Source of the DNA: Isurus oxyrinchus
Lineage: Eukaryota
DNA: 64,000 nucleotides
Assembly (NCBI GenBank): GCA_026770705.1
Contig: JANJGN010000150.1
Span: 558,001 to 622,000, forward strand
Reading direction: 5' to 3'
Positions 9,480 through 63,995 of this stretch are shown one piece after another. Within the stretch, counting starts at the first letter, position 1. The number at the start of each line of letters is the position of its first letter. The notes below the pieces were generated by a model. It ran no database searches. It worked only from the letters and a program-made list of their open reading frames with translations, and was not told the DNA's origin. The position numbers and the translations under genes are program-made.

Positions 9480-9730
9480 GAGGGAGTGCTGCACTGTTGG
9501 AGGGTCAGTACTGAGGGAGTGCTGCACTGTCAGAGGGTCAGTACTGAGAGAGTGCTGCACTGTTGGAGGGTTAGCACTGAGGGAGTGCTGCACTTCCAGA
9601 GGGTCAGTGCTGAGGGAGTGCTGCACTCCCAGAGGGTCAATAATGAAGGAGTGCTGCACTCTCAAAGGGTCAATGCTGAGGGAGTGCTGCACTGTCAGAG
9701 GGTGGGCACTGAGGGAATGCTGCTCTGTCA
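9480..9730 (-). repeat. 33-bp satellite (cagtgcagcactccctcagtactgaccctctga)
   Basis: Period 33; also at 7310-7412 and 24290-24620. Confidence 0.9.
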
Positions 9731-10134
9731 GACCTGCCATATTTCAGATGACATTTGAAATTAGCAACATGCCTCATGTATAATTATATATCATCAGCTC
9801 AAAATAAATAGATTATTCCTGTACGTTTCACTTTACTGTAAATTGTTTGCAGTTTCATTTCCTTAGAAACCAGGCTTGTGTGATCACTATTTTTAAATAA
9901 CGTTAATAATAAAGATGCAACAATCCACACGCACACATGTACACACACACACACACTCACTCACAAGGGTACATAGACAGACACACACTCACNNNNNNNN
10001 NNNNNNNNNNNNNNNNNNNNNNNNNNNNNNNNNNNNNNNNNNNNNNNNNNNNNNNNNNNNNNNNNNNNNNNNNNNNNNNNNNNNNNNNNNNNNNNNNNNN
10101 NNNNNNNNNNNNNNNNNNNNNNNNNNNNNNNNNN

Positions 10135-12330
10135 GTTAGAGTCCAATAAAAATTTAAAAGAATATATGATTAATACAATTGCTTGTCTTTGAGGTGTAGA
10201 TTGTTGACGTTTGCAGCTGTTCAAGGTTAATTGGTTTCCTGTGGCATCCTGGTGGTGATTTGATTCAGATTTGCACTTTGTTGAAGATGCACTGTTAGCT
10301 TCAGAAAGAGAGAGAGAGAGAGGGAGAATTTCTGCTCTTTTCCAGCAGTGTTTTTGAGTGACTGCCATCTTTCTTTTTCCTCCTACTTTCTCTTATATCT
10401 GCTTGACAGAACCTGTTGTTAAACTCCTGTCTGTATATTCCCAAAGGGAATTCGATCAGCATGTCTTGCATTCATTGTCGCAGACCAAGTAATCCCTTTT
10501 TTGATCTTTGCATCTCTGAAACATTTGATGCATTTCAAGATATAAATCAACAGGAGATGAAGGCATTTCATCCTCCACAAGAGGTTTTGAATGACTGATG
10601 AATATCTGCATGGTGAGCAGTTCCCATTAGCTTGATAGACCTACAGTGATCAGAGTCCAGCGCTTTGCATTTTTAATGGAGCCCCTGTTTCAGGTGGACC
10701 CTGACACACCTCAGTGAGAACTTTCATGCAACATGTCTGTAGTGCAATTCATTTGAAGCTTTCCAGAGAAGTGATCAAGTTTGCAGTATCAGCAATCAGG
10801 TGACTCGTGACAGCCATTTTTGATCAATGCCTAATCTTGTACTTTTGAAAAACAGGTCTCCTTTAAACAGTTCAATACGTTTTTGGCTCATTGGTTAAGT
10901 TGAAGGAAGCTCTGTTATGACATAACAGATGGTAAATGCTGAGCTGTTCAAATCCTGGAGGGAAACTTGAAACAACTGTCACAACTAATTTCCAACTTGT
11001 ATGTTTTGAGATGTGGGCTTTGAATTCAGTAGTAATGAGATTAAGATGTTTAAGAGGTAATTATGGTTGGTTGAAAAAAAGGGTTTAAAATATATTTTCC
11101 CCCAAATACAATTTCCAAAGCAAGTCTCTTTGATTGTTAAGAATGAACCAATTAAACCACGTATGGTGGAGTCAAAGAAAGAGTAAGTTTATTAGTTACC
11201 TAACTGGAGGAAAAATAATNNNNNNNNNNNNNNNNNNNNNNNNNNNNNNNNNNNNNNNNNNNNNNNNNNNNNNNNNNNNNNNNNNNNNNNNNNNNNNNNN
11301 NNNNNNNNNNNNNNNNNNNNNNNNNNNNNNNNNNNNNNNNNNNNNNNNNNNNNNNNNNNNNNNNNNNNNNNNNNNNNNNNNNNNNNNNNNNNNNNNNNNN
11401 NNNNNNNNNNNNNNNNNNNNNNNNNNNNNNNNNNNNNNNNNNNNNNNNNNNNNNNNNNNNNNNNNNNNNNNNNNNNNNNNNNNNNNNNNNNNNNNNNNNN
11501 NNNNNNNNNNNNNNNNNNNNATAATTATAGAGTCCAATAAAAAATTAAAAGAGTTGTTTGCTTGTACTACAGCGTAGGCTGTGAAGTTTGAAGCTGTTTT
11601 AAATTAGTTGGTTTTCTGTAGATTCCTGTATTTTATCTGGCTCAGACTTGCACATTGTTGAAGACATTCTGTTAGCTTCAGACAGAGAGAGAGAGAGGGA
11701 GAAATCATTTCTGCTCTTTTCCAGCAGTGTTTGTGGAAGACTGCCATATTTCTTTTTCCCCTCCTTTCTCTTATATCTGCTTGGCAGAACCATTTGTTAA
11801 ACTCCTGTCTGTATATCCCTGAAGTCAATTCGATCAGCATGTTTTGCATTCATTGTTATAGACCAAGTATTCCCATTTTTTTATCTTTGCATCTCTGAAA
11901 CCTTTGATGCATTTCAAGATATAAGTCAACAGGAGACGGGGGTATTGTATCCTCCACAGGGGGTTTTGAATGGTTGATGATTATCCGCTTGGTGAGCAGT
12001 TCCCAATGTTTTGATTGAACTACAGCTGATCAAAGTCCAGCACTTTACATTGTAATGCCTTCCTTTTAAGAGTGTCTCTATTTGAAGTGGACCCTGACAC
12101 ACCCCAGGCGTGAACTTCCATGCAACAGGTCTGCAGTGCAATTCATTTGAACCTTTCCAGAGAAGTGATCAACTTCACAGTATCAGCAATCAGGTGACTT
12201 GTGTCAGCCATTTTTGATCTGTGTACAATCTTGTATTTCTTTGAAAAACAGGTCGCTTTTAGACAGTTCAATATGTCTTTGGTCTCTTAGTTAAGTTGTA
12301 GGACGCTCTTAATCGCAGTTTGTTGTCATT
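10135..12330. repeat. Two diverged direct copies of an unidentified ~750-bp segment (10135-10920; 11521-12310)
   Basis: Shared blocks such as ctgctcttttccagcagtgttt, atctttgcatctctgaaa and atcagcaatcaggtgact. Confidence 0.8.
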
Positions 12331-13389
12331 GGGATATTGTCTTTGTGTGTGTGTGTGTTTGTGTGAGTGAGTGTGTGAGTGAATGTGTGTGTGTGAGTGA
12401 ATGTGTGTGTGTGTGTGAATGTGTGTGTTTGTGTCTGTCTGNNNNNNNNNNNNNNNNNNNNNNNNNNNNNNNNNNNNNNNNNNNNNNNNNNNNNNNNNNN
12501 NNNNNNNNNNNNNNNNNNNNNNNNNNNNNNNNNNNNNNNNNNNNNNNNNNNNNNNNNNNNNNNNNNNNNNNNNNNNNNNNNNNNNNNNNNNNNNNNNNNN
12601 NNNNNNNNNNNNNNNNNNNNNNNNNNNNNNNNNNNNNNNNNNNNNNNNNNNNNNNNNNNNNNNNNNNNNNNNNNNNNNNNNNNNNNNNNACAGAGTGAAA
12701 CCTCCTTGAGTCTGGCCACTGTGTTTAACATTTAAGCCACACAGACAGGATGTGGTTAAAAGGTGAAACCACAAGGAGTGAGTGTGTTTCCCAGTGACTG
12801 TCTCTCTGTGGGTTTCCTGTGGGTTTCTGTGAACTGCCTGTGGTTTTAAAAAAAATCTTCCAACCCCACATGCACGGCATCAAATAAGGAATTGGAAGCT
12901 GCAGCTCAGAGAGTAACTAGTCCCCCGAGAATTCACAGCCCCTCAAACACAGATTAACAGCATTAATCCTGACCGTCAGCCCACTCACTCATTGCCTCTT
13001 GTCTCAGACACTAGAAAGTGGAAGTTAAGGCCGGATTTTCACTCCCAGGTCGGGGGACACAGAGACGGCAGGAAAAAATAACAAAATAGGTCTCGAGCAC
13101 ACAGAGCTCCAAGGGAAGGGTCGTGCTGCAGCTAAGGTGTGAGACATGGCACATTCCCCGGATGCAGCATTGAGGCTTGTATGTCTACACAGCTGATGTA
13201 GGTGCACATGGAACACATGTGAATGAGCACTGTGATGCACACACACCCTGGAGAGTAATATCCCTCCATGCACTACATATCAGGCTAACATCAACTCATG
13301 TTGTCATTGCTGACCAACAGGGTTGAAGCAGGTCACAGAGACGGCTGCGTCTGGGGTTGGGCCAGCCTCCCTGAGACTCACCGTCCTAA

Positions 13390-19136: not shown

Positions 19137-19946
19137 CTGTAAAAACAGCCATTAATTACTGCACTACAGGTTTACAATGATGCTCCGATGTATCTCGAGA
19201 AGCGATACACTCACTCAGTGTTTAAATACTCATTCTCGGGCAATGCTGACATTTATTGTCCATCCCTAGTTTCCCCTTGAGAAGGTGGTGGGGGGTCTTC
19301 CTCCTGAACCACTGGTTTGTCCCAAACTGGGAGACCAGTTCAGAGGGCAGGTGTGAGTTAACCATGTTGGTGTCTGAGACTGGAGTCACATCCACATCGA
19401 GACATGCTTCCCTCCCTAAAGGGTATGTAGTCTCTACACATGTAACAACCAACCTCACTGAAATAATCGACTATCAGGTCATTATCACACGGTGGTTTGC
19501 GGGATCTTGCTGTGCACAAATCAGTACCTGTGTTTCCTACATTACAACAGTGAGCTCACTTCGATAATGCTGCATTGGCTGTTGAATGTTTAGTAATTTC
19601 TAAGCAATTTATGAATACAATAGTTGCATTTCAACATGTAACATTTATATATAATATTTATCAATTCAAGAATGAGAAGTTCAGCAATTAAAAGGGTTGT
19701 TCAGGACAGTTAGAGAGAGAAAGGTCGTCAAGTATGGAGATTGGAAACGAAGACCTGACAGCCTTGTCCTGACAACCATTGAAGGAGAAACTGAGAGCAA
19801 AAACAGAAAGGAAGAGGAAAAATTGGATGTGTGGATAACGTGGACTGAGCGAGGATTGAAGAAAACTGGATTAAAAACAACACGATCCCAATGGCTCCAC
19901 GGAGACCACGGAGACAACAAACAAACAAATGTATCTCCACACTCAC

Positions 19947-20228
19947 ATTCCACAGTGATGGTTATGAACCCCTCCACTGCTCCATGTTCATTCTCTGCCA
20001 CACACTGATAGTCTCCAGTGTCCCTGGATGTAACGTGAGGAATCACCAACCACAGCTCATTGTTGGAACTTGTTCTGTTCATTGGGACATTAAGATGTCG
20101 CCACGTCAGGTTAGAAGCTGGGAAGCTCTCGACAGAGCAGATTATCACTGCAGAATTCCCCTCAATTATATTGATTGATGAAGCGTAAATCATATTAAGC
20201 GAAGTAAATGAGAGATCCTGTGGTGCAT
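19947..20228 (-). CDS. Gene D C2/I-set Ig exon 4
   Basis: 282 nt, phase 1-1; CSVESFP..LTW..DTGDYQC. Confidence 0.9.
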
Positions 20229-20915
20229 CTAAAAACAAATCAAGTGTTTAATGTGAGCAAGCACAGTTTACAGCAAGACTCCATGCATCATCTCTCTGTA
20301 TCTGATGTCTGAATGCATAGCCAGGTCCCTCCACTCCATATAACTTCCATTGTCAAATTTATAGTGGGCACTGCCTATGTAAACTGTCAAACTGCAGTTA
20401 CATTCTCCCACCAGTAGAGGTGCTGTCCACCTAGAATGAAAGAAACTTTCACATCCTCAGGATATACCCAAGGGCTTGACAGGCAATGATTGTATTTGAT
20501 TGATGGAGCACTGAGGGGTAAATCTACAATTCTCTGTTCAGGAGGTTGCTCATCCAATTCAGGGTCTTGTTGATCTGGAGTTTACCTTCCTTCAACACAG
20601 AATCAGAGCTGATACCGAGACTCCAGTGCAGCACTGAGAGAGGACAGGGAACTCACACATGTGTTTGTGTTTGTGTGTTTTAGTGTGTTTGTGTTTCTGC
20701 ACAAGAGAGTATGTTTATGTGTGCGTGTGTGTATGTGTTTGTGCATGTGTGCGTGTGCCTGTTTGTATACATCTGTGCATGAGTGAGTGTGTGCATGTGT
20801 ATGTCTATGTGTGTGCACATGTGACTGTGTGTGTGAGTTGAGTGTGTGTTTGTTTCTGTGTATGTGTTTCAACATGCATCACTGTGTTTAAGTGTGCGTG
20901 TATGTGTCTACACAT

Positions 20916-20948
<33 letters not shown>

Positions 20949-20974
20949 TGATGTTGAAGTTTGCAGTAACTCAC

Positions 20975-21256
20975 GTTCCACAGTGATGGTTATGAATCCC
21001 TCCACTGCTCCATGTTCATTCTCTGCCACACACTGATAGTCTCCAGTGTCCCTGGATGTAACGTGAGGAATCACCAACCACAGCTCATTGTTGGAACTTG
21101 TTCTGTTCATTGGGACATTAAGATGTCGCCACGTCAGGTTAGAAGCTGGGAAGCTCTCGACGGAGCAGATTATCACTGCAGAATTCCCCTCAATTATATT
21201 GATCAATGAAGCGTTAATCATATCAAGAGAATTAATTGAGAGATTCTGTGGTGCGT
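20975..21256 (-). CDS. Gene D C2/I-set Ig exon 3
   Basis: 282 nt, phase 1-1, canonical ag/gt. Confidence 0.9.
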
Positions 21257-21681
21257 CTAAAAACAAATAAAGATTTTAATGTGAGCAAGCACAGTGCACA
21301 GCAAGACTCCATGCATCATCTCTCTGTATCTGATGTTGGAATGCTTTTCCAGGTACCTTCCCTCATGAAAAATTACTGTCATATTTATAATGGGCGCTTC
21401 CTATGTAAACTGTCACACGGCAGTTGCTTTCTCCCACCAGTAGAGTTGCTAACTGTCTAGAATGAAAGAAACATCCTTTAACACTCTCAAGATGTCCCCA
21501 AAGGCTTGACAGGCAATGAATTGTATTTGATCGATGGAGAACTGAGGGGTAAATCTACTGTTCAGGAAGTTGCTCATCCAATTCAGGGTCTTGCTGATCT
21601 GGAGTTTACCTTCCTTCAGCACAGAATCGGAGCTGATACCAAGACTCCAGTGCAGCACTGAGAGAGGAGAGGCCGCGCATA

Positions 21682-21722
<41 letters not shown>

Positions 21723-22020
21723 GCAAGTGAGTTTGTATTTGTGTGTATGCGCGTGTCTGTCAGCGCATATGTGGGTGTGTGTGTGTGTGTGTCTGTGTGT
21801 GTGTCTGTGTGTGTATGTCTGTGCTTGAGGGAGTGTGTGTGCATATGTGTGTCTATGTGTGCGCATGAATGATTGTATGTGTGAGTTGAGTTTGTGTGTG
21901 TTTCTGTGTATGTGTTTGAACGTATGTTTGTGTGTAAGCGTGCATGTTTGTGTCTACACATGAGTGTTTTTGCATGTGTGAGTATGTGTGTGAGAGATGT
22001 TGAAGTCTGTGTACACTCAC

Positions 22021-22302
22021 ATTCCACAGTGATGGTTATGAATCCCTCCACTGCTCCATGTTCATTCTCTGCCACACACTGATAGTCTCCAGTGTCCCTG
22101 GATGTAACGTGAGGAATCACCAACCACAGCTCATTGTAGCAACTTGTTTTGTTCATTGGGACATTAAGATGTCGCCACGTCAGGTTAGAAGCTGGGAAGC
22201 TCTCGACAGAGCAGATTATCACTGCAGAATTCCCCTCAATTATATTGATCGATGAAGCATTAATCATTTCAAGAGAAGTAAATGAGAGATCCTGTGGTGA
22301 AT
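22021..22302 (-). CDS. Gene D C2/I-set Ig exon 2 (extra Cys, NKTSCYNEL)
   Basis: 282 nt, phase 1-1, canonical ag/gt. Confidence 0.9.
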
Positions 22303-23072
22303 CTAAGAACAAATCAAGTGTTTAATGTGAGCAAGCAGCGTGCACAGCAAGACTCCATGCATCATCTCTCTGTATCTGATGTCTGTATGCATTTCCAGAT
22401 ACCTTCCCTCCATATAACTTCCACTGTCAAATTTATAATGGGCACTGCCGATGTAAACAGTCAAACTACAGTTACATTCTCCCACCAGTAGAGGTGCTGT
22501 CCACCTAGAATGAAAGAAACTTTCACATCCTCAGGATTTTGCCAAGGGATTTACGGGAATGAATTGTATTTGATCGATGGAGCACTGAGGGGTAAATCTA
22601 CAATTCTCTGTTCAGGAGGTTGCTCATCCAGTTCAGGGTCTTGTTGATCTGGAGTTTACCTTCCTTCAACACAGAATCGGAGCTGACACCGAGACTCCAG
22701 TGCAGACCTGAGAGAGAAGAGGGACCTCACCCGTGTTTATGTGTATGTGTTTGTGTTTCTACATATGTGAGTATGTTTGTGTGAGTATGCATGCATGTGT
22801 CTGTGTGTGCATGTGTGTATGTGTTTGCGCAAATGTGCGTGTGTCTTTGTGTATATTTCTGTGCATAAGTGAATGTGTGTACATGTGTGTGTGCATGTGT
22901 GTGTCTTTGTGTGCGCATGAATGTTTGTATGTGTGAGTTGAGTTTGTGTGTGTTTCTGTGTATGTGTTTGAACGTATGTTTGTGTGTAAGCGTGCATGTT
23001 TGTGTCTACACATGAGTGTTTTTGCATGTGTGAGTGTGTGTGTGAGAGATGTTGAAGTCTGTGTACACTCAC

Positions 23073-23354
23073 ATTCCACAGTGATGGTGATGAATCCCTC
23101 CACTGCTCCATGTTCATTCTCTGCCACACACTGATAGTCTCCAGTGTCCCTGGATGTAACGTGAGGAATCACCAACCACAGCTCATTGTTGCAACTTGTT
23201 CTGTTCATTGGGACATTAAGATGTCGCCACGTCAGGTTAGAAGCTGGGAACCTCTCGACAGAGCAGATTATCACTGCAGAATTCCCCTCAATTATATTGA
23301 TCGATGAAGCATTAATCATTTCAAGAGAAGTAAATGTGAGATTCTGTGGAGCAT
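23073..23354 (-). CDS. Gene D C2/I-set Ig exon 1 (extra Cys, NRTSCNNEL); no leader or V exon found upstream
   Basis: 282 nt, phase 1-1, canonical ag/gt. Confidence 0.9.
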
Positions 23355-26300
23355 CTAAGAACAAATCAAGTGTTTAATGTGAGCAAGCAGCGTGCACAGC
23401 AAGACTCCATGCATCATCTCTCTGTATCTGATGTCTGTATGCATTTCCAGATACCTTCCCTCCATATAACTTCCACTGTCAAATTTATAATGGGCACTGC
23501 CGATGTAAACAGTCAAACTACAGTTACATTCTCCCACCAGTAGAGGTGCTGTCCACCTAGAATGAAAGAAACTTTCACATCCTCAGGATTTTGCCAAGGG
23601 ATTTACGGGAATGAATTGTATTTGATCGATGGAGCACTGAGGGGTAAATCTACAATTCTCTGTTCAGGAGGTTGCTCATCCAGTTCAGGGTCTTGTTGAT
23701 CTGGAGTTTACCTTCCTTCAACACAGAATCGGAGCTGACACCGAGACTCCAGTGCAGACCTGAGAGAGAAGAGGGACCTCACCCGTGTTTATGTGTATGT
23801 GTTTGTGTTTCTACATATGTGAGTATGTTTGTGTGAGTATGCATGCATGTGTCTGTGTGTGCATGTGTGTATGTGTTTGCGCAAATGTGCGTGTGTCTTT
23901 GTGTATATTTCTGTGCATAAGTGAATGTGTGTACATGTGTATGTGTATGTGTGTGCATGTGTGAGTGTGTGTGTGTGAGTTGAGTGTGTGTATGTTTCTG
24001 TGTAGGTTTTTGCACGTGTATGACTGTGTGTAAATGTGCATGTATGTGCCTACACATGAGTGTGTGTGTGTGTGTGTGTGTACATGTGTGCATGTGGATT
24101 GTCGCATCTTTATTATTAACGTTATTTAAAAATAGTGATCACACAAGCCTGGCTTCTAAGGAGATGAAACTGCAAACAATTTACAGTAAAGTGAAATGTA
24201 CAGGAATAATCTATTTATTTTGAGTTGATGATATATAATTATACATGAGGCATGTTGCTAATTTCAAACATCATCTGAAATATGGCAGGTCTGACAGAGC
24301 AGCATTCCCTCAGTGTCCACCCTCTGACAGTGCAGCACTCCCTCAGCATTGACGCTTTGAGAGTGCAGCACTCCTTCAGTATTGACCCTCTGGAAGTGCA
24401 GCACTCCCTCAGTGTTAACCCTCCAACAGTGCAGCACTCCTTGAGTACTGACCCTCTGACAGTTCAGCACTGCCTCAGTACTGACCCTTTGATAGAGCAG
24501 GGTTTCCCTCAGTACTGACCTCCTGACAGTGCAGCACTCCCTCAGTACTGACCCTCTGACAGTGCAGCACTCCCTCAATACTGACCCTCCAACAGTGCAG
24601 CACTCCCTCAGCACTCCCTCACTGGGGAGAGTCCATCTGGGTTTTGAGCTGAAACCTTGAGACGGTTTGAAAACCCCAACCTGCTGTCTTGGAGAGAGAG
24701 AGAGAGAGAGTGAGTGCGTGTGTGAGAAAGAGTGACAATGTGTGTGTGAGAGAGTGACAGTGCGTATGTGTGCGAGAGAGAAGGATAGAGAGAAAGAGAA
24801 AATGTGTGAGAGAGCAAAAGAGAGGTAGAGTGTGTACGCATGAGAGAGCGAAGTAGCTGAATTGTGTGAGAGAGAGAGTGTGTGTGAGAGAAAGGGAATG
24901 TCTGTGTTAGAGAGAGAGCTTATGTGTGAGAGAGAAAGAAAGAGAGAGAATCTGTGAGTGTTAGATAGTGTGCGTGTGAAAGAGAGAGTGTGTATGTGAG
25001 AGAGCGTGTGCGTGAGACCGTGTGTGTGTGTGTGTTTGAGAGAGAGGGTGTATGTGTTTGAGAGAAGGAGTGTGCGAGAGAGGGTGTGTGTATTTGAGAG
25101 GGAGTGTGTGTGTTTAAAAGAATGAACAAGAGAAAATGTGTGTACGTGTGTGTGTGTGTGTCTGCGTGTGCATTCTGACTGAGCCGAGTTTACAGTTTCA
25201 CACGTTGCTAGGGACCACTTTTCTGCCTCTCTGTCAGACTGTGTGTATCTGACAGCAGGTCAGGCAGGAATAGTCCAGAATGCGCTGTGGTTTTGTAGCA
25301 TTGAAACAACGACATGAACTAATTGAGTGCTGCACCAAATAAAGACATGGAGTGACCACACCAAAAAACCACGTGACTTCCCCAGTTTCACATCTCTCTC
25401 AAACACAGAAAAACTGGGTTAACACTGACCCTCCTCCCAGAGCCAGTTCACCTCGTGTCCGATGCAGTCAGGAGAGGAAGATCATCTCTCCTCCGATCCT
25501 GCTAAACTGAACATTTCCAGAATTAGATCAGCTCCCTGAAGTGTCTCCAGTTAGACATTCATCTGACAGGATTGACTCTACAACCCTGGGGACTCATTCT
25601 CCTGTAAGTAAAACACTTGCTGCTCCTGTCAAATCTCTTCTGTACAGCATGGTCTCTGGATGTCCCAGAACACTTTACAGTTGAGTTCACCCTTTTTTCG
25701 AAGTGTGGTTACTGTTGTAATGTAGGAAACGCAGCAGCCAATTAGCGCACAGCAAGCTCCCACAAACAGCAATGTGATCATCTGTTTTTGGTGATGTTGG
25801 TTGAGGGATAAATACTGGTCCCAGGACACCGGGGAGATCTCCCCCCTGCTCTTCCTCCAAATAGTGGCTGTGGGATCTTTCACACCTGCCCGAGAGGGCA
25901 GACGGGGGTCTCGGTTTAGTGTCTAATATTGGACTAATCTCCAGGCGAGGTTGGCTGGATGGATTATTGACAAGGTCCATTCACCCTGTAAAGAGTTTCT
26001 CTGGTTTGAAATACCCGATCAAACATCGAGTTCTGTGTCTAAACCTTGTGTTGAAAAGACACCTTTCCAGCTCTTCACCTGCCATTAGCTTGTTGAGTCT
26101 TCACATGCTCTGTCTGTCCGTAACCAACCCCTCTTAACTCATCCTTTCCTTGTCGTACATCGAGCTGTTCATCCTGACGGGTTCCATCCTTCCCAGTAAC
26201 ACTCCAACTCCGACATCAAACTAACTCCCAACACGTTGATGAATTGCATGGATTCCAGCGTCAGTTGGTTCTGTCTGAGGCTGTTTCTCTGATCGGGGAC

Positions 26301-36480: not shown

Positions 36481-36609
36481 TGTAGTGACTGCCTGAATTA
36501 AGTGCTTTGTGGTGAAGGAAGCTACATTGATATCAGACCTTTCACATTCTCAGGGTGTCTCAAAGTGCTTCACAGACAATGTAAGTAACTGATCTTTATT
36601 TGTTTTCAG

Positions 36610-36891
36610 ACACACCACAGAATCTCTCAATTAATTCTCTTGATATGATTAACGTTTCATTGATCAATATAATTGAGGGGAATTCTGCAGTGATAATCTG
36701 CTCAGTCGAGAGCTTCCCAGCTTCTAACCTGACGTGGCGACATCTTAATGTCCCAATGAACAGAACAAGTTCCAACAATGAGCTGTGGTTGGTGATTCCT
36801 CACGTTACATCCAGGGACACTGGAGACTATCAATGTGTGGCAGAGAATGAACATGGAGCAGTGGAGGGGTTCATAACCATCACTGTGGAAC
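36610..36891 (+). CDS. Gene B C2/I-set Ig exon (module shared with genes C and D)
   Basis: 282 nt, phase 1-1, ttttcag / gtgagt. Confidence 0.9.
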
Positions 36892-37370
36892 GTGAGTTAC
36901 ACAGACTTCAACAACTCTCTCAGATTTGAACACATATACATAAATGCACTCCCACACGCACTCACTGCACTGGAGTCTTGGTGTCAGCTCCAATTCTGGA
37001 TGGAACGAAGGTAAACTCCAGATCAACAAGACCCTGAATTGGATGACCAAACTCCTGAACAGTGAATTGTAGATTTACCCCTCAGTGCTCCATCAATCAA
37101 ATACAATTCATTGCCTGTAAAGGCTTGGCGAAATCCTGAGGATGTGAATGAAAGTTTCTTTCATTCTAGATTGATAGCACCTCAACTGGTGGGGGAATGC
37201 AACTGCAGTGTGACAGTTTACATAGGCAGTGTCCATTATAAATGTGACAGAGGAACTTATGCTGAGGAAGGTGCCTGGAATTGTATTCAGACATCAGATA
37301 CGTAGAGATGATACATGGAGTCTTGATGTGCATTGTGCTTGCTCACTCTAAAATCTTTATATGTTTTTAG

Positions 37371-37652
37371 ATGCTCCACAGAACCTCTCAATTACTTCTC
37401 TTGATATGATTAACGCTTCATCGATCAATATAATTGAGGGGAATTCTACAGTGATAATCTGCTCTGTCGAGAGCTTCCCAGCTTCTAACCTGACGTGGCG
37501 ACATCTTAATGTCCCAATGAACAGAACAAGTTCCAACAATGAGCTGTGGTTGGTGATTCCTCACGTTACATCCAGGGACACTGGAGACTATCAGTGTGTG
37601 GCAGAGAATGAACATGGAGCAGTGGAGGGATTCATAACCATCACTGTGGAAC
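37371..37652 (+). CDS. Gene B second C2/I-set Ig exon (shared module)
   Basis: 282 nt, phase 1-1, tttttag / gtgagt. Confidence 0.9.
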
Positions 37653-37689
37653 GTGAGTTACACAGAATTCTACATTCTCTTGTTATTAG

Positions 37690-38725
37690 CTCATGGGATG
37701 TGGGCATTGTTGACAAGGCCAGAAATTATTGCCCATCTGTAACTGCCCCTTGAGAAGGTGGTGGTGAGCTGCCTTCTTTAACCACTGCAGTCCATGTGGT
37801 GTAGGCACACCAACAGTGCTGTTAGAGAGGGAGTTCCAGGATTTTGACCCAACGACGGTGAAGGAACGGCCGATATAGTTCCAAGTCCCAGGGCAGACCA
37901 CCACCTCATGTTGATTTCCAAGTCACACACCTCACTGACTTGGAACTGTCTTGGTGGAAGAGGTTAAGGGTTTGGAAGGTGCAGTCGAAGAAGCTTTGGT
38001 GAGTTGCTGCAGTGCATCTTGTAGATGGTGCATACACTGCTGCCATTGTGTGCCAGTGGTGGAGGGTATGAATGTTTATGCTGGTGGATGGGCTGTCGAT
38101 CAAACAAGCTGCTCCTGGATGGTGTCGAGCTTCTTGAGTGTTGTTGGAGCTGCACTCATCCAGCCAAGTGGAGATTATTCCATCACAATCCTGACTTGTG
38201 CCTTGTCGATGGTGGACAGGCTTTGGAGAGTCAGGAGGTGAGTTACTCACCGCAGAGTTCCCAGCCTCTTACCCGTTCTTGTAACCACATTATTTCCTGT
38301 TGCCGGGTTGTTGCCAGGGCCAATAGCCTTTGCTGTATCCAGTATCATCAGCTGATTCCTGATGTCACGTGGAGTCAATCGAATTGTCTGAAAGCTGACA
38401 TCTGTGATGCTGGGACCCTCTGGAGGAGGCCGAGATGGAGCATCCACTCAGCACTTCTGGCTGAACATGGTTGCCAATGCTTCAGCCTTGTCGTTTGCAC
38501 TGATGTGCTGAGCTCCCCCATCATTAAGGATGGGGATATTTGTGGAATATCCTCCTCCTGTTAGATCTTTAATTGTCCATCACCATTCATGACTGGATGT
38601 GGCAGGACTGCAGAGCTTAGATCTGACCCGTTGGTTGTGGGATCGCTTTGCTCTGTCTATAGCATGTTGTTTCCGCTGTTTGGTGTGTATGTAGTCCTGT
38701 GTGTCACCTCAGCAGCTTGGCACCT
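37690..38725 (-). mobile_element. CR1/L2-clade LINE fragments
   Basis: Same family as 14350-15410; AKAIGPGNNPA, internally deleted. Confidence 0.8.
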
Positions 38726-48940: not shown

Positions 48941-49093
48941 GACATCTTAATGTCCCAATGAACAGAACAAGTTCCAACAATGAGCTGTGGTTGGTGATTA
49001 CTCACGTTACATCCAGGGACACTGGCGACTATCAGTGTGTGGCAGAGAATGAACATGGAGCAGTGGAGGGGTTCATAATCATTACTGTGGAAT
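48941..49093 (+). pseudogene. Gene C 5'-truncated copy of the shared C2 exon
   Basis: Only HLNVPMNRTS...ITVE plus the gtgagt donor remain; the acceptor and first ~130 nt are replaced by unrelated sequence at 48758-48940. Confidence 0.85.
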
Positions 49094-50756
49094 GTGAGTG
49101 TACACAGACATCAACATCTCTCTCAGATTCGAATACTACACAAACACCCTCAAATGTACAGACCTAAATAGACACATGCAGACACACATATATGACCACA
49201 CACAAAGACACACTCACAAACAAACACACTAGCACAAGACTCCCTCATGGGTTACCTGACCTCCCTCAGTACTACACTGGAGCGTGGGCTGAATTCTGGG
49301 ATTTGTGTTCCCATTCATATTTATAGAAGAATATGGAAATTACTCATACAAACACTCAGATGCATAGAGGCACTCATAGATACTCTCTGCTTCTCCAACT
49401 CTCTCTCTCCCTTCAAGGAGCTACCTGAATCCTAACCCGTTGACGAATAACTAGTCCCAACTCCTCTTTATCTGATTCTGTGATTTTTTTGTGAATCTGA
49501 GAGTAAGAGAGAGGTGGAGAGGTTTAGTAAGAGAATTCCTGCTGATGAAAAGCTTACATCCTGTTCTCACTATTTCCGTGCCCATTATGTCCAAAGCCCC
49601 TGTTTATAGTGATGACTGCCTATGTAAACGTCACACTGTAGTTACAGCCTCCCACCAGTGGTGGCATTGTAGCACTTAATCCTTGTGTTTCCCAGCTTTT
49701 CAAGCAAATCTACTTCCCAGTTTGCTACACAAGCTGGGAGTTCATCGGAATTCAATTATTTCTCAAAAGGTAGATTTGATAATTCATTTTATTGAAAACT
49801 TCCTCAACGCCTCCCTGAAGTGTTTACACTCTCCGGGAAGCAGGATTAGGCTGGATGTTGGGGAGTTCATCTTTTCCCAGAGAGTAGGGATCCTCGGGAA
49901 TGTGCTGTCAGTGGGTGTGGTGGTTGCTGATTCTCTGTCACCTTCAAGAGGGATCTGGAGTGGTTACTGACTGGGGGAGAGATCATGGAAGCGGAGAATG
50001 ATACAGCACAGGAGGAGGCCATTCAGCCCATTGTGCCTGTGCCAGGTCTTTCAATGTTCTATCCAATCAGATCCACTAACCACCACACCACTTTGCCCCC
50101 ATCTTCCTCCTTCAAGTGTTTATCCAATTTCCCTTTTGAAAGTTCCTATTGAATCTGCTTCCGCTGCCCTTTCAGGCAGCACCTTCCAGATCACAACAAC
50201 TCGCTCTGTCAAAACAAATTCTCCTCATCTCCCCCTCCGGTTCATCAATCTGTGTCCCTCTGGTTACCGACCCTCCTGCCCCTTAAATACATCGGTAGTG
50301 TTCACATCACACACTCCCTGTGGGAGCGAGTTCCACATTCTCCCCTCTCTCTGGGTAAAGATTGGAACTGTTTATTAAGCGGGGGGTGTATGTCCGTGGG
50401 GGAGTCCATCTCGATCCTGCCCGATTCGCACACACGTCCGAGATGGATTTCCACCCTGCACTAAACGTTTCCAGAATTTTCTACAGCACAATCCTGTACA
50501 CAGCGATGGAGAGAAACATTGGACAGGGAGTCCAACAGCACAATGATCCATTCTCACCAATGTTCCACGCTAAGGGGAAAGTTCCGATTGTCCACTCTTA
50601 GAGTGTTTACAATGAAAACATTCCTTCCACATTGAATCCCAGTGGATGGGTCAATATTACAGCAAATGTTGAAGTGATATGAAGCTTGATTGTTCAGCCA
50701 GAGTGAGAGATTGAAAGCGGAGAGTCAGTGATGATTTCTTTCTGTGTGTTCTCTAG

Positions 50757-56275: not shown

Positions 56276-59032
56276 AATGCGAAGCTAGTCTCAGTAATGG
56301 TGACCATGAAACTAAGGCCAATTGTTGCAAAAACCCATCTGGGTCACTAATGCCCTTTGGGGAAGGAAACCTGCCGTCCTTACCCATTCTGGCCTACGTG
56401 TGACTCCTGACCCACAGCAATGTGGTTGACTCTTAACTGGCCCCTGAAATGGCCGAGCAAGCCACTGAGTTATATCAAAACCTGCCACAGACCAGTCAAA
56501 CCAGGCGAACTGCAGCACTTCGAAAAGGCAGCTCAGCACCCCCTTCTCAAGGGGTCAGTCAGGAACAGGTAACAAACGCTGTCCACATCCCGTGAAAGAA
56601 TTTTGGTAAAAAGGTAGCCGTGTATCACCACCCACGGCCAGCGCCAACCCCCCCACCCCTACCTGATTGCACCAGTTTCAGATTACACCAGGTCAATGAT
56701 CGGATAGAAACTCAAACCAATGAGATGAGCACAGAGAAGGATCAAGCCAGAGAGAGTTGGTGGGAAGAATTGGGAAAGCAACAAAAAAGGCAGAGCGGAC
56801 ACTAACACTATAACAAAGTAAAGACCAGAGGAGGAAGGAAGCAAGTGCGAAGAGGAATTGAGAGCAGAGCTGGTAGGCTGCTTGTCGAAGCCAAGGAACC
56901 TCCATAGGGCACATCCACAGTGCTGTTGGGGAGGGTGATACATGATTTTGACCCAGGATCATCAAGTGTTGCACTGGCAGAGCCTTTAAAGTAAAGGGAC
57001 CTTTACTGCCCATGCACCCCCCCGCCCTACAAAGCTGTTGACCTGCTGAGTCCACCTGTACAGGCAACCTCCAGACAGTTGGCTACAGAGGCCATTGCAG
57101 CTGCTGAATATGACTTCCAGTTTCAAACCCTTCATGAATGCAAGGATGGAGAATTCAGCAGGAATATTCCTGCACACCCTGTGGCAGATCCTGTAAATAA
57201 AAGGGACCTTCACTCACTCCCCAAAGCTGCTGACCTGCTGATTCACATCTACAGGCAACCTCCAAATAGTCAACTAGAGAAGATAACGCAGCTGCTGAAT
57301 GTGACTCCTAGTTTTAAACCCTTCACTCTGGAAAGAAGGAATCCAGAGCAATGGCCTCAGTATGATTCTTCACAGAAACTGATTTTAAATCTCATGTCTA
57401 AGTATTATTTTTCCTTTGCTTACATTTTAATCCCTGCACCTGATGGCTTTATCGCTTCACATTTAATAACTTTCAGCAGGAGCCACGTTCAAATTGAATG
57501 GACAAGCTGGCTTGGGAGGCCAAAAGGCCTACTCCTGCTTCTGTTTATTTATGTTAGTGTTGTTATGTAGTGGAACTAGAGAGGTTATATCAGTTATGAG
57601 AACATTAAGCAAACAGCAGCAAGAATTGAACACCTACGTTGTGGTTTATGAAAAGGTTTTCAACCTGGTCAACTGGTAAAATCTGTTGAAAGTGGGCTAT
57701 CATGGCGTGTGCCCTTTGTGAGATATTTGTAACAACGTTCTCGATGTCGGAACAGCTTGCATTGAACAAAGCTGATCTTTACCCAGAACTTCAGAGGAAG
57801 GGGGGACAATTGTTCCCTGGTGTGGGGGGCATGGTGGGGGGGGAGGGTGAGGGAGAGACAAGTAGCCTGAAGTACCAAGCCAGACACTTTGTGAAGACAA
57901 AAGTTGTTTATTCATTTTTTTTTACAAATCATAATCTTTACAATTAAAGACCCGACAAGATAATGGTGAATCATGAACACATTGTCGGGGTGAATCTGTG
58001 CCCGGGAGCATAAAGCAGCAAAATCAGGAGCCCGCTTTACATCTCTCTGAATTTTAACTATCATTAACCCCAGTAACATCCATTCAAATGACTTAGTCAT
58101 AAGATTCCTCACACATTCACTTGCACACTCACACACCCACACCCACACAGACACACTGACACACTCACTCATTCACATTGACACACACTGACACAGTCAC
58201 ACACACCCACACAGACACACTGACACACTCACTCATTCACATTGACACACACTGAAACAGTCACACACACCCACACAGACACACTGACACACTCACTCAT
58301 TCACATTGACACACACTGACACAGTCACACACACACATACACACACACACGCTGACACAATCACACACATTCACATTGACACACACATATTGACAGTCAC
58401 ACATACACACACACACTCACTCATAAAGACAGACACAAACACAGCCACGCACACACTAACACATACTCACACACACTCACTCACGCACACACACATTGAT
58501 ACACTCAAACACTCACAGACACACTCACATACTCACACATAAACAAAGAAGTTTACATTATAAACACTATAAACACAGGTTAGATTAAAAGTGCAGTATA
58601 TTGGTACAAAGATAGGCCATAATGAAAACTTCAATATGAGATCGTCACTAATAAATCCAATGGGGATTTCAGGAGAAATCTCTTCACCCAGACAGTGGGG
58701 AGAATGTGGAACTCGCTCCCACAGAGAGTAGTTGAGGTGAATAGTGTCGATGTATTTAAGGGGAAGCTGGATAAACACACGAGGGAGAAATGAATAGAAG
58801 GATATGGTGATGGGGTGAGATGGAGAAGGGGTGGGCGGAGTCTCGTGAGGAGCAGGAACACCAGCATGGAGCAGATGGGCCAAATGGCTTCTTTCCCTGC
58901 TGTAAAACGCAGGTAAAGTTTCAGTTGGAATTAATGAACAGGGCCTGTGTTAAATAGATTGCTAAGCAGTAGATAAGGAGGGGAGAGGCTGTGGCATGGT
59001 GCAGGATGACCTTGCGTGAATGAGGCCAGGGT

Positions 59033-59149
59033 CTAATATCTACAGCAGAGACCACAAGTCTCATTTGGTTCTCTCCAATTACAGCAGTTACAGCAGAATC
59101 TGCAGAGCTGCTGTCTGCCCATTCTCTTCTGGCGCTGCAGCAAGGAGCC
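59033..59149 (-). CDS. HAMP: Hepcidin exon 3 (furin site + mature peptide)
   Basis: Acceptor ttttccag. 117 nt = 38 codons + TAG. Pattern C-x2-CC-x-CC-x8-C-x2-CC. Confidence 0.95.
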   Translation of the reverse strand, partial: GSLLQRQKRMGRQQLCRFCCNCCNWREPNETCGLCCRY

Positions 59150-62100
59150 CTGGAAAAGCAGGAGGACAATAGGTGAGAACATTCCGGAAAGAAAGAAGGC
59201 ATCATTTCAATCAGGCGCGTCATTGGAAGGAGGATGGCGCATTTCTATAGCGCCTTTCCCCTCCTCAGGATGGCCCAAAGTGTTCCACAGCTGAAGGAAG
59301 GACTTTTTCTGAAGTGAGCTCACCGCTGTAATGTAGGAAACGCAGCAGGCAATTCACGCACAGCAAGATCCCACAAACAGAAATGTGATAATGGCCCCGA
59401 TTTTCAGTTTTTTACCAATGTCAGTTGAGGGATAAATGTTTGCCCCAGGAAAGCAGACATAACTGCATCTCATCCACCCCCCACCACCCCCTCCACACAT
59501 ACCCCCAACTCCTGACGCACTTCATCTAAATTGTGGCCATGGAATCCTCTATATCCACCTGAGAGGGCAGATGTTGTCTCAGTTTAACATCTCATCTGAA
59601 AGACAGCGCCTTCAACAGTGCAGCACCCCCTCAGTACTGACCCTCCGACTGTGCAGTACTCCCTCAGTACTGACCGTCTGACAATGCAGCACCCCCTCAG
59701 TACTGACCCTCCGACTGTGCAGTCCCCCACCGGTACTGACCCTCTGACAGTGCAGCACTCCAAGACTGACCGTCTGACAATGCAGCACCCCCTCAGTACT
59801 GACCCTCCGACTGTCCTGCCCCCCCGCCGGTACTGACCCTCCGACAGCTCGGTAATTTCTCAATTACGCCTGGTGGTCCTTTTAACTCAGAGCTGAGAGT
59901 TGCAGAGAATCGAGCAGACACCCTGAACTGACACTTGCAGTGCAAGTACTGGGAGCGCGCTGGTCATTATCATGCTGCTGTCTGTGGGATCTTACTGTGC
60001 GCCAATGGCTGATTCTTTTCCCACAGTACATCAGTGACCTCACATGAAAGAAAAAAAGCACTTGATTGTCTGCGAAACACTTTGGGACGTCCTGATGTGT
60101 TGGAAGGCGCTAGAGAAATGCAAGTCCTCTTTGTCTTTCACTCGATCCTCTAAGGTGTCTGTTGATTAACCAGCCTCTCGGTGTATGATGTAGGCCTGGT
60201 TATAAACAGTTAGAAGGATCAAATATCAAAAGTGCTTTGGCTGACAGTCAAACCGATTGTGCATTCGGAGAGATTAGATATGGTCTGCACACAATGACTC
60301 CAGTCTCTGGCACTGACTGCCGCCTGGGGTCTCCCTTCCACATAACACTCACAACTTGCATTTACACAGCGCCTCTGACATTGCAAAATGTCCCAGCCCA
60401 CATTACCGGAGCGTAAATCAGAGAGAAGTCTAACACTGAGTCACATATGGAGATATTAGGGATAGGTGACCAAAAGCTTGGTCAAAGATGTCAGTTTTTA
60501 AGGAGCGTCTTAAAGGAGAGAGAGAGAGAGAGGCAGAGAGGTTAAGGGAGGGTATTCCGGAGCTCAGGGCCCCAGGCAGCTGAAGGCACGGCCACCAATG
60601 GTGGAGCGATGGGAATCAGGGGGACCCGGGAGATGCAGTAATGTCAGAGATTTTGGAGGAACATCGGGACCGGAGGAGGTGTTCTCCTGCTCCATATCTC
60701 TCTCTCTCTTCCTCTCATCCACTCCTCCTCTCCCTGTCTCTCTCTCTCCTACTCTTCCTCTCAATTGCCCTCTCTCCCAATCTTTCTCTCCTCTCTCCCT
60801 TTTCCTGTCTCTCTCCCTCTCTCTCTCCCTGTCTCATTCTCCCACTCTGTATCTCTCCCTCTCTCTCACACTATTTTTGTACCTTTCGCTCACTCTGTAA
60901 CTCTCCCTTTCCTGTTAATTTCTCTCTCTTGGACAATCTCTCTTCCCTTTTCACTTTCCCTCACTCTGCATCTCTTCTTTAATTTCTCCCTCTGTCACTC
61001 TCTCCCACCTATGTTCTTTCCCTTTCACCCCTCCCCGTCCCACTCTCTGTCTCTCTCTTCCAATCCCTCCCTCCCCCATTCCATCCCTCTCTCCGACTCT
61101 CGACTCCCAGCCTCTCTTTAACCCACTCCCAGGCTGGATCAGTCTCCCTCTCACTATTCCCGGCGTGGGTTACATTTAAAATTCCTGTGGGGATATGTTC
61201 ACTTCCTTGGAATTGCCTCTTCCCAGCTTTGCAAAAAAAGTTGGGGGGGGGGGCTCGATTTCAAACATGCCTCCTGAGTATAACCGAGACAGACTGCCAC
61301 TGAAATCAGCTTGAAATCAGAAAACTTTCTGTGGAAGAAACGAGCAGGGAGAAACCTTAAAATAAGGAATGAATTTCCACCTACCGTGTCCGGGGAATCC
61401 ACAGATTTCTCAATCGTCGAAGAACCTAAAGCAGTGTCAACCTGCAAAAAGAAAGAATTTATCAGGGAGAAAGTGAGAGGAGGATTGAGGGAGAGGGAGA
61501 GAGAGAGAGAGAGGTACAGGAGAGAGAGGGGGAGGAGGACAGACTTGCATTTCTCTAACGCCTTTCACCACATCCCAAAGCATTTCACAGCCACTGAAGG
61601 ATGTTTTTGAAGTGCACTCACACTGTAGGAAATGTGGCAGCTGATTTGTGCACAGCAAGATCCCACAAATAGCAATGTGATCATGGCCTAGATCATCTGT
61701 TTTTGGTGATGTTGGGTGAGGGATAAATATTGGTGCCAGGACACCGGGGAGAACTCCCCCTGCTCTTCCTCCAAATAGTGGCTGTGGGATCTTTCACACC
61801 CGCCCGAGAGGGCAGACGGGGGACTCAGTTTAATGTCTCATTCAACATTGTTGCGCTCCCTCAGTACTAACCCTTTGACACTGCAGCACTCCCTTAGTAT
61901 TAACCCTTCGATAGTGCTGCGCTCCCTCAGTACTGTCCCTCCGTCAGTGCAGCTCTATTTCAGTACTAACCCTTCGACACAGCAGCACTCCCTCAGTACT
62001 GACCTCCGACAGTATAGCACTCCCTCAGTACTGTCCCTCCAATAGTGCAACACTTCCACACTACTGACCCTCTGAGAGTGCAGCACTCCCTCAGCACGGA

Positions 62101-63713
62101 GCGTTTATCTACATTATGGGACTGAATTCCCTGGAGTGAGACTCAGACCAGTGATTTAGGTAGGGTTGTGGGGGCTGGAGGAGGTTACAGCGATAGGGAG
62201 GGCTGTAGAGGCTGTAGGAGGTTACAGAGAAAGGGAGGGTTGTAAGGGCTGTAGGAAGTTACAGAGATAGGGAGGGTTGTAGAGGCTGTAGGAGGTTACA
62301 GAGATAGGGAGGGTTGTAGGGGCTGGAGGAGGTTACAGAAATAGGGAGGGCTGTAGAGGCTGTAGGAGGTTACAGAGATAGGGAGGGTTGTAAGGGCTGT
62401 AGGAAGTTACAGAGATAGGGAGGGTTGTAGAGGCTGTAGGAGGTTACAGAGATGGGGGAGTTGTGGGGGCTGGAGGAGGTTACAGAGGTAGGGAGGTGTG
62501 TAGGGGCTGTAGGAGGTTACAGAGATGGGGTGGTTGTGGGGGCTGGAGGAGGTTACAGATGTAGGGAGGGTTGTAGAGGCTGGAGGAGGTTACCAAAATA
62601 GACACTGCTGTAGGGGCCACAGTAGGTTACAGAGATAGGGAGAGTTATAGTGTGGAGAGGAGCTTATAGAGTTCAGGAGGATTGTAGGGGCTGGAGGAGG
62701 TTACAGTGATTGTGAGGGTTGTGGGGCCTGGAGGATTTTACAGAGATAGGGAGGGTTGTAGGGTCTGGAGCAGGTTACAGAGATAGGGAGGGTTGTAGGG
62801 TCTGGAGCAGGTTACAGAGATAGGGAGGGTTGTAGGGTCTGGAGCAGGTTACAGAGATAGGGAGGGTTGTAGGGTCTGGAGGAGGTTACAGTGATCGTGA
62901 GGGTTGTGGGGCCTGGGGGAGGTTACAGAGATAGGGAGTGTTGTGGGGACTGTAGGAGGTTACATAGATAGGGAGGGTTGTCGGGTCTGGAGGAGGTTAC
63001 AGAGATAGGGAGGGTTATAGGGACTGGAGGAGGTTACAGAGATAGGGAGGGTTGTAGAGACTGTAGGATGTTACAGAGATAGGGATTGTTGTAGGGGCTG
63101 GAGGAGGTTACAGAGATAGGGAGGGTTGTAGGGGCTGGAGGAGGTTACAGAGATAGGGAGGGTTGTAGGGGCTGGAGGATGTTACAGAGATAGGGAGGGT
63201 TGTAGGGGCTGGAGGAGGTTACAGAGATAGGGAGGGTTGTAGGGGCTGGAGGAGGTTACAGAGATAGGGAGGGTTGTACGGGCTGGAGGAGGTTACAGAG
63301 ATAGGGAGGGTTGTAGGGGTTGGAGGAAGTTACAGAGATAGGGAGGGTTGTAGGGGCTGGAGCAGGTTACAGAAATAGGGAGGGTTGTACGGGCTGGTGG
63401 AGGTTACAGAGATAGGGAGTCGCTGAGGAGGGATTGAAAACAAGAATGAGAATTTCAGGGGAAATGACAGAAGGAAATGATGTTAAATTCATAGAGGGTG
63501 ACAATATTAAAGGCACGAACATAATAATATCAAACTGCGGAAGAGACCAGTCTATCTGGGTGGTAGACGTAGAGTCATGTGCAAGAAACACCTCACCCAG
63601 AGGGACATCTCTTAGCTTAACCTCGACAAGGAGAAGAAGTGACTCAGCTGCAGGGAGAGCAGCAAAGTCAGAGTGAACAAGACAAGTCGCCATTTCATCT
63701 GGGAGCTTCCCAT
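59033..63713 (-). CDS. HAMP: Hepcidin (prepro-hepcidin), 3 coding exons: 63713/63698..63622 (or ..63597), 61441..61385, 59149..59033; exon 1 frame is disrupted as assembled
   Basis: Exon 3 gives GSLLQRQKR|MGRQQLCRFCCNCCNWREPNETCGLCCRY*: an RQKR furin site plus the 8-Cys hepcidin pattern. Exon 2 is a phase 0-0 pro-region. Exon 1 is the hydrophobic leader MKWRLVLFTLTLLLSLQL. TATA and GGCGCC lie upstream, and Siglec/CD22-like genes are adjacent. Confidence 0.9.
61385..61441 (-). CDS. HAMP: Hepcidin exon 2 (pro-region VDTALGSSTIEKSVDSPDT)
   Basis: Acceptor ttctttttgcag, donor ACG|gtaggt. 57 nt, phase 0-0, in frame with exon 3. Confidence 0.8.
61545..61845. mobile_element. Short interspersed repeat (SINE-like); copies at 7820-8085, 25650-25925 and 59230-59610
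   Basis: Shared ~280-nt sequence (gcacagcaagatcccacaaa...ctccaaatagtggctgtgggatctttcacacc). Confidence 0.7.
62155..63420 (-). repeat. 37-bp minisatellite in hepcidin intron 1
   Basis: Same unit as 1990-2610, opposite orientation. Confidence 0.92.
63622..63713 (-). CDS. HAMP: Hepcidin exon 1 (signal peptide (MGSSQ)MKWRLVLFTLTLLLSLQLSHFFSLS)
   Basis: ATGs at 63713 and 63698, ~75-90 nt after a TATAA, encode a signal-peptide-like stretch. Donor gag|gttaag at 63621 is one base out of phase. The alternative donor tgg|gtgagg at 63596 is in phase but includes TAA at 63614-63612. Confidence 0.7.
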
Positions 63714-63779
63714 CTCTGCCTGTCTCTTCTGATCTTCTGGCTCTGCTTTGATGCTTTGGTTTGTAACTAGAGGAGCTTC

Positions 63780-63995
63780 CTGCTCTTATACCTGAAACAC
63801 TTGAAGGGGACAGCCGCGGGTGGGTTGCTGTGTGGTATTACACCCATTTCTGGATATTGCAGTGTCGATGTTCCCTGTCCCACTGGCCTGGGACCAGCAG
63901 TAAGGTCACTGGGACATTGACTGTCTGGCGCCGAGAACTATCAGTCCCTCCGCAACGCCCTTCACCTTGTGCAAATATGTGTTCATATTGATGCA
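63780..63995 (-). promoter_or_regulatory. Hepcidin proximal promoter: TATAA (63790-63786), GGCGCC (63927-63932) abutting GTCT/AGAC (63923-63926), C/EBP-like TTGCACAA (63974-63967)
   Basis: The motifs are read directly. GGCGCC BMP-responsive elements and C/EBP sites are established regulators of vertebrate HAMP. Confidence 0.65.

Follow-up and report, generated by a model that had tools for sequence, protein, structure and literature searches.

In vertebrates the master iron hormone is hepcidin, whose conserved active part is considered to be the first nine residues. On the minus strand of the 64,000-nucleotide stretch of shark DNA analysed here (the window), positions 59149-59033 encode a hepcidin-like peptide with an altered N-terminus and a lengthened loop. 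This locus raises the question of whether the peptide belongs to a genuine hepcidin gene, what such a peptide might do, and whether this particular copy is able to make it.

Read on the minus strand, 59149-59033 translates as GSLLQ, RQKR, a 29-residue peptide starting MGRQQL and a stop codon, which reproduces exactly the RQKR and the 29-residue peptide with all eight cysteines described in the initial annotation, as well as the N-E-T sequon that it had placed inside the loop NWREPNET. The plus-strand reading of the same positions was rejected, as nothing hepcidin-like appears in its translation. The elements of this exon are the following.

59033-59149, minus strand: coding part of exon 3, comprising the propeptide end, RQKR, the mature peptide and the stop codon (translation, Pfam match)
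59123-59134, minus strand: RQKR, a furin/proprotein-convertase site (R-X-K-R), directly ahead of the mature peptide
59036-59122, minus strand: predicted 29-residue mature peptide with eight cysteines (translation)
59057-59080, minus strand: eight-residue hairpin loop NWREPNET, from the second CC pair to the next Cys (translation, alignment)
59057-59065, minus strand: N-E-T sequon within that loop (translation)

The cysteines, located at the C-terminal end of the precursor, follow the pattern C-x2-CC-x-CC-x8-C-x2-CC, and in a six-frame scan of the whole 64 kb this pattern, even when reduced to its bare CCxCC core, occurred a single time. The Pfam Hepcidin profile (PF06446) matched residues 5-37 of exon 3 with 31.6 bits against a gathering cut-off of 27 (E = 2e-7), aligning 33 residues to 29 profile positions (24-52 of 53) and thereby revealing a net insertion of four residues. 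The match of exon 3 to hepcidin is not a chance event. Cleavage at RQKR would be expected from established hepcidin processing, and for the resulting 29-mer we computed an average mass of 3491 Da in the reduced form, which would become ~3483 Da once four disulfides have formed, a pI of ~8.2 and a net charge of ~+1.4 to +2.

Other searches with this exon were less informative. Bass hepcidin 1S6W was the sole match in a PDB sequence search (E = 0.26) and was used for alignment rather than as proof, while AlphaFold2, run on exon 3 alone as a single sequence without an alignment, returned a low-confidence helical model for this disulfide-rich peptide (pLDDT 71, pTM 0.38). The one match to exon 3 in a protein-representative search, protein P0001, was discarded as a translated repeat that is not a hepcidin. 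A protein homology search with the stop-free stretch 59036-59206 (residues 18-57 scored) yielded no candidate with three shared words, a result that does not imply absence, and a protein atlas search likewise gave no usable match.

To place this exon within a gene, we used contigs from four public runs (X1, X4, X5 and X7) mapped to 58600-63790. The assignment of these runs as RNA is a software guess, but the contrast in depth between exons and introns and the observed joints fit spliced RNA only. A genuine hepcidin (HAMP-family) gene with three exons emerges on the minus strand, with positions 59149-59033 as its last exon, and is organized as follows.

63785-63790, minus strand: TATAAG box, 77 nt upstream of the ATG (sequence; high X1 depth in the bin 63646-63790)
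63621-63713, minus strand: coding part of exon 1, 31 codons, signal peptide that starts MGSSQMKWRLVLF, has the hydrophobic core LVLFTLTLLLSL and ends SLSR (sequence; mRNA joint at 63621)
61442-63620, minus strand: intron 1 (mRNA joint)
61385-61441, minus strand: exon 2, 19 codons of propeptide, VDTALGSSTIEKSVDSPDT (sole open frame; joints on both sides; X1 depth 1.6e5)
59150-61384, minus strand: intron 2, canonical GT..AG, phase 0 (joint 59149/61385 in nine X1 contigs and one X4 contig)
58754-59032, minus strand: 3'UTR, at least 279 nt (X4 record 12 covers 58754-59148 ahead of its joint to exon 2)
62157-63419: 37-nt unit in 34 tandem copies within intron 1 (86% match, TRF score 1798)
59615-59847 and 61856-62094: two arrays of a 33-nt unit (CAGTACTGA... 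type, SINE-tail-like), one in each intron

Summed exon by exon, the precursor comprises 88 codons (31 + 19 + 38), beginning with the ATG at 63713 on the minus strand, which is followed by a textbook signal peptide, and continuing into an acidic propeptide spread over exons 2 and 3. The acceptor ahead of exon 3 consists of a polypyrimidine tract and AG (ttttccag). No AATAAA or ATTAAA polyadenylation signal was found within 1.1 kb of the stop codon. The PF06446 score, the eight cysteines, the R-X-K/R-R site and the three exons with a signal peptide in exon 1 jointly place the gene in the hepcidin family, such that the family call of the initial annotation, which had named the profile search as a check, is borne out.

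The repeats in and around the gene left their own traces in the mapping. Contigs of all four runs pile up on the 37-nt array, so this unit is either repeated genome-wide or transcribed. False joints arise from contigs that jump between the two 33-nt arrays, and an imperfect, long CA-rich microsatellite with a 64-nt higher-order unit occupies 58124-58539, ~500 nt downstream of the stop codon.

Elsewhere in the window, we found Ig-domain exons (Pfam Ig_3/I-set, E ~1e-12) at 19684-23373 (minus strand), 36585-37750 (plus strand) and 48943-49164 (plus strand). These exons are near-identical and tandemly arranged: the minus strand has four of them and the plus strand two, in inverted orientation, in addition to a partial one, and each is followed by a CA/TH-rich microsatellite, an arrangement that suggests a recently amplified array of Siglec-like receptor genes or exons. 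Mammalian HAMP adjoins MAG, a Siglec, and the Ig-domain exons in the window fit this linkage. Four runs of N (231, 142, 301 and 248 bases) lie within 8549-12689. Neither tblastn nor blastn detected a second copy of any of the three hepcidin exons within the 64-kb window.

The long-loop peptide type is produced massively in this species, as judged from spliced RNA contigs. In X1, depth reached 6.8e5-7.5e5 in the two bins covering exon 3 and the proximal 3'UTR, 1.6e5 in the exon 2 bin and 2.8e5 in the exon 1 bin, compared with mostly 4e2-3e3 in repeat-free intron bins (~1e3 in most of them), amounting to about 100-700 times more depth in exons than in introns. The joint across intron 1 (61441|63621) was present in nine X1 contigs. 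Within the three exons no differing letters were listed for X1, although far weaker differences are listed for the introns, implying that the mRNA of the species encodes exactly this 29-residue peptide. A minor joint, carried by one X1 contig with a depth of 844, connects exon 2 (61384/61385) to a cryptic acceptor at 60194/60195 inside intron 2 and may represent a rare alternative or aberrant isoform.

At the exon junctions two variants were seen. The last codon of exon 2 is either ACG (Thr) or ATG (Met), depending on position 61386, with the Met contig reaching a depth of 13,900, and the last codon of exon 1 is either AGG or CGG, depending on position 63623, both encoding Arg. These junction variants point to expression from several paralogs or alleles, and the presence of several sequence variants among the RNA contigs agrees with the initial description of the gene as a paralog.

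Having a genuine and abundantly expressed peptide type, we compared it with hepcidins of known function. Human hepcidin-25 (HAMP) shares with it the organization into three exons, the signal peptide, the propeptide and the basic convertase site, as well as the order of the eight cysteines, the six residues before the first Cys and Phe9. The two differ in copy number (a single gene in human, apparently multi-copy in the shark), in the loop (4 residues in human and 8 in the shark, where it includes the N-E-T sequon) and in the N-terminus, in which Arg takes the place of His3 and Gln that of Phe4, leaving the shark peptide without an ATCUN motif and with an incomplete ferroportin patch.

The bioactive patch of human hepcidin is formed by His3, Phe4, Ile6 and Phe9 (PMC7915682). 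Two of these four positions are kept in the shark peptide (Leu6 and Phe9), together with the six-residue segment ahead of the first Cys (Cys7), while Arg3 and Gln4 occupy the other two. The peptide contains no His at any position and begins M-G-R, such that the ATCUN motif (X-X-His, with His at position 3) is absent. The absence of a ferroportin-type N-terminus, put forward in the initial annotation, was thus recovered in detail: no His precedes the first Cys, and His3, Phe4 and the ATCUN motif are all missing. In the iron-hormone subtype, as represented by mammalian hepcidin-25 and teleost Hamp1, the N-terminal patch comprises His3, Phe4 or Leu4, Ile6 or Leu6 and an aromatic residue at position 9; the shark peptide, with two of these four and no ATCUN motif, departs from that subtype.

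The loop that had been described as doubled is so in comparison with human hepcidin (4 residues, HRSK) but not with sea bass Hamp1 and Hamp2, which have five residues each and over which the excess is three. In solved hepcidins the disulfides connect residues 7-23, 10-13, 11-19 and 14-22 (PMC7915682). By analogy, the mature shark peptide would fold as a beta-hairpin with four disulfides, in which the turn between Cys14 and the next Cys would be lengthened from 4-5 to 8 residues and the sequon would sit at its exposed tip. N-glycosylation is possible at this NxT sequon, which has no Pro after it and lies in a peptide of the secretory route.

Among teleost hepcidins, sea bass Hamp1 has in common with the shark peptide its family, its gene structure, Leu6 and the CC-N-CC core; unlike the shark peptide, which starts MGRQQL, it starts QSHLSL and regulates ferroportin (PMC5665920). 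The core CRFCCNCC is identical between the shark peptide and sea bass Hamp2 or hybrid bass hepcidin (PDB 1S6W) (PMC5665920). Sea bass Hamp2, which lacks QSHL, does not regulate ferroportin (PMC5665920). The likeness to the Hamp2 type extends to the C-terminal CG-x-CCR-aromatic segment, which is nearly identical, to the missing QSHL N-terminus and to the apparent multi-copy state, with more than one expressed variant among the shark RNA contigs. In the loop, the PN of bass hepcidin 1S6W aligns with the PN of the shark peptide, whose loop differs from the Hamp2 type by being three residues longer, by the NWRE inserted ahead of PN and by the sequon. Since teleost Hamp2 arose within teleosts, the shark likeness does not reflect common descent of the subtype, and on taxonomic grounds descent of the shark peptide from the teleost hamp2 lineage is unlikely. 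Among the papers covered by our literature search, none described a chondrichthyan hepcidin at the sequence level; in the plasma proteome of the nurse shark, hepcidin figures as a name without further detail.

What would a hepcidin of this composition do? With Arg and Gln replacing His3 and Phe4, the family would be a poor ferroportin ligand by mammalian and teleost rules, and the core and tail, equal or near to those of sea bass Hamp2, favour a Hamp2-like action in host defence. We therefore propose that the family may consist of secreted liver peptides that act in host defence as teleost Hamp2-type hepcidins do. This role is the leading candidate, at somewhat less than even odds, followed at some distance by a role as iron hormone or a dual role, with the smallest share falling to some other function. 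Set against the Hamp2-like reading are a net charge of only ~+2, the retention of Leu6, Phe9 and the six-residue N-terminal segment, and a motif in the promoter.

63923-63932, minus strand: GGCGCC with AGAC immediately after it, ~219 nt ahead of the ATG (motif scan)

GGCGCC occurs twice in the 64-kb window, one of the two occurrences lying within the 287 nt upstream of the hepcidin gene, where the probability of finding it by chance is ~1%. The proximal BMP-RE of human HAMP is GGCGCC, and the motif at 63923-63932 resembles a BMP-responsive element joined to a SMAD-binding element. Its presence weakly hints at iron regulation that was retained rather than lost.

The long-loop peptide could accordingly be the animal's iron hormone, that is, the true iron-regulatory hepcidin of this lineage, co-adapted with its ferroportin and encoded by many copies that raise the dose. 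Such a role would be in line with the very high expression, which is of the kind known for liver hepcidin, with the GGCGCC-AGAC motif being one of merely two GGCGCC occurrences in 64 kb, and with the retention of Leu6, Cys7 and Phe9 within the N-terminal region that includes the patch (PMC7915682). It is made doubtful by the Arg and Gln that stand where His3 and Phe4 should be, and by a core that is closer to that of sea bass Hamp2, a peptide that does not regulate ferroportin (PMC5665920). We keep the Hamp2-like role as the preferred reading of the family.

While the above describes the peptide type, the copy present in the window carries differences of its own.

63619-63620, minus strand: first two bases of intron 1, TT instead of a GT donor (mRNA joint and window sequence)
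58841, 58848, 58856, 58882 and 58951, minus strand: 3'UTR letters of this copy that differ from the bulk RNA, the first three being T, A and G as read on the plus strand (run contigs)

The joint observed across intron 1 skips 2179 bases and ends in TT..AG on the minus strand, and both junction-variant forms likewise net 2179 bases. Cutting the window sequence at a canonical GT-AG pair (GAG|GTTAAG ... TTGCAG|GTTGAC) would instead skip 2180. In the register of the mRNA, exon 1 ends with AGG at 63621 and the intron of the window starts TTAAGC, in which positions +2 to +5 (TAAG) correspond to the donor consensus. Use of the shifted GT at 63621-63620 would shorten exon 1 to 92 nt, shift the frame and lead to a TAG five codons into exon 2; an exon model built on this donor (GAG|GT), with a 92-nt exon 1 out of frame with exon 2, was overruled by the RNA joints. 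The simplest reading is that the T at +1 (63620) represents a G-to-T change of the first intron base, which belongs to the classical null splice mutations and here also gives rise to the shifted GT that breaks the frame. Deletion of one base from a GGG run is a possible alternative origin, but the donor left behind would then be far weaker.

The 3'UTR allowed us to ask which copies feed the abundant mRNA. In X1, the letters of the window accounted for 0.17% of the depth at 58848, 0.11% at 58856 and 4.6% at 58841, and at these three positions no contig of X4, X5 or X7 carried the letter of the window; the RNA shows a mixture of letters at 58882 and 58951. As contigs drop rare variants, the low share of this copy's letters does not amount to proof of silence, yet their near absence indicates that the bulk of the mRNA comes from sister copies or other alleles. 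X1 intron contigs (records 1 and 6) match this copy at 99-100%, showing that this copy, or a near-identical one, is transcribed at the level of pre-mRNA.

With T in place of G in the donor of intron 1, this copy probably cannot make the peptide, and most likely it is a non-productive duplicate of recent origin, in which decay has yet to reach the coding exons. Taken as a whole, a real long-loop hepcidin gene of an abundant type, with this copy dead and the family acting in a Hamp2-like manner, is the explanation that we consider best, with a probability of roughly 55%.

Alternatively, the gene may be intact and productive, with the T at 63620 owing to a mistake in assembly or polishing, or to a rare allele, in which case the locus itself would feed the abundant mRNA. 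The match of all three coding exons to the mRNA at every listed position, the TATA box in the promoter and the X1 intron contigs with 99-100% identity to this copy all speak for this possibility, as does the susceptibility of a single base in a multi-copy region to polishing with misplaced reads. It is nonetheless less likely in view of the 3'UTR, where the letters of the window at 58848 and 58856 make up at most 0.2% of the X1 depth and occur in no contig of X4, X5 or X7. Genuine non-canonical splicing of a TT..AG intron in this copy is highly improbable, for although the sole intron 1 joint seen falls exactly at the window's TT..AG, sister copies with GT would be expected to give that joint too, the RNA contains almost none of the 3'UTR letters of this copy, and TT donors are, to our knowledge, essentially without precedent for the spliceosome.

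Beyond the reading that we favour, of a dead copy within a living, Hamp2-like family, a broader scenario can be sketched, which we regard as speculative and rather improbable. In it, the lineage would have replaced or supplemented its classical hepcidin with a massively amplified and highly expressed long-loop form that bears an N-glycan at the hairpin tip and either regulates ferroportin without His3 and Phe4 or acts on a new target, encoded in an array that expands and degenerates in step with the Siglec genes beside it. If the N-glycan on the hairpin tip were real, this would be the first glycosylated hepcidin.

These results describe a real and unusual variant of hepcidin, with a lower value attached to this particular locus, which is one flawed and probably dead copy of the family. 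A shark, belonging to the oldest living branch of jawed vertebrates, produces large amounts of a hepcidin from which half of the active patch is missing and whose hairpin tip is doubled in length and possibly glycosylated. The finding offers a parallel to the teleost split between iron-type and defence-type hepcidins, and is relevant to the timing and manner in which the hepcidin-ferroportin axis became fixed.
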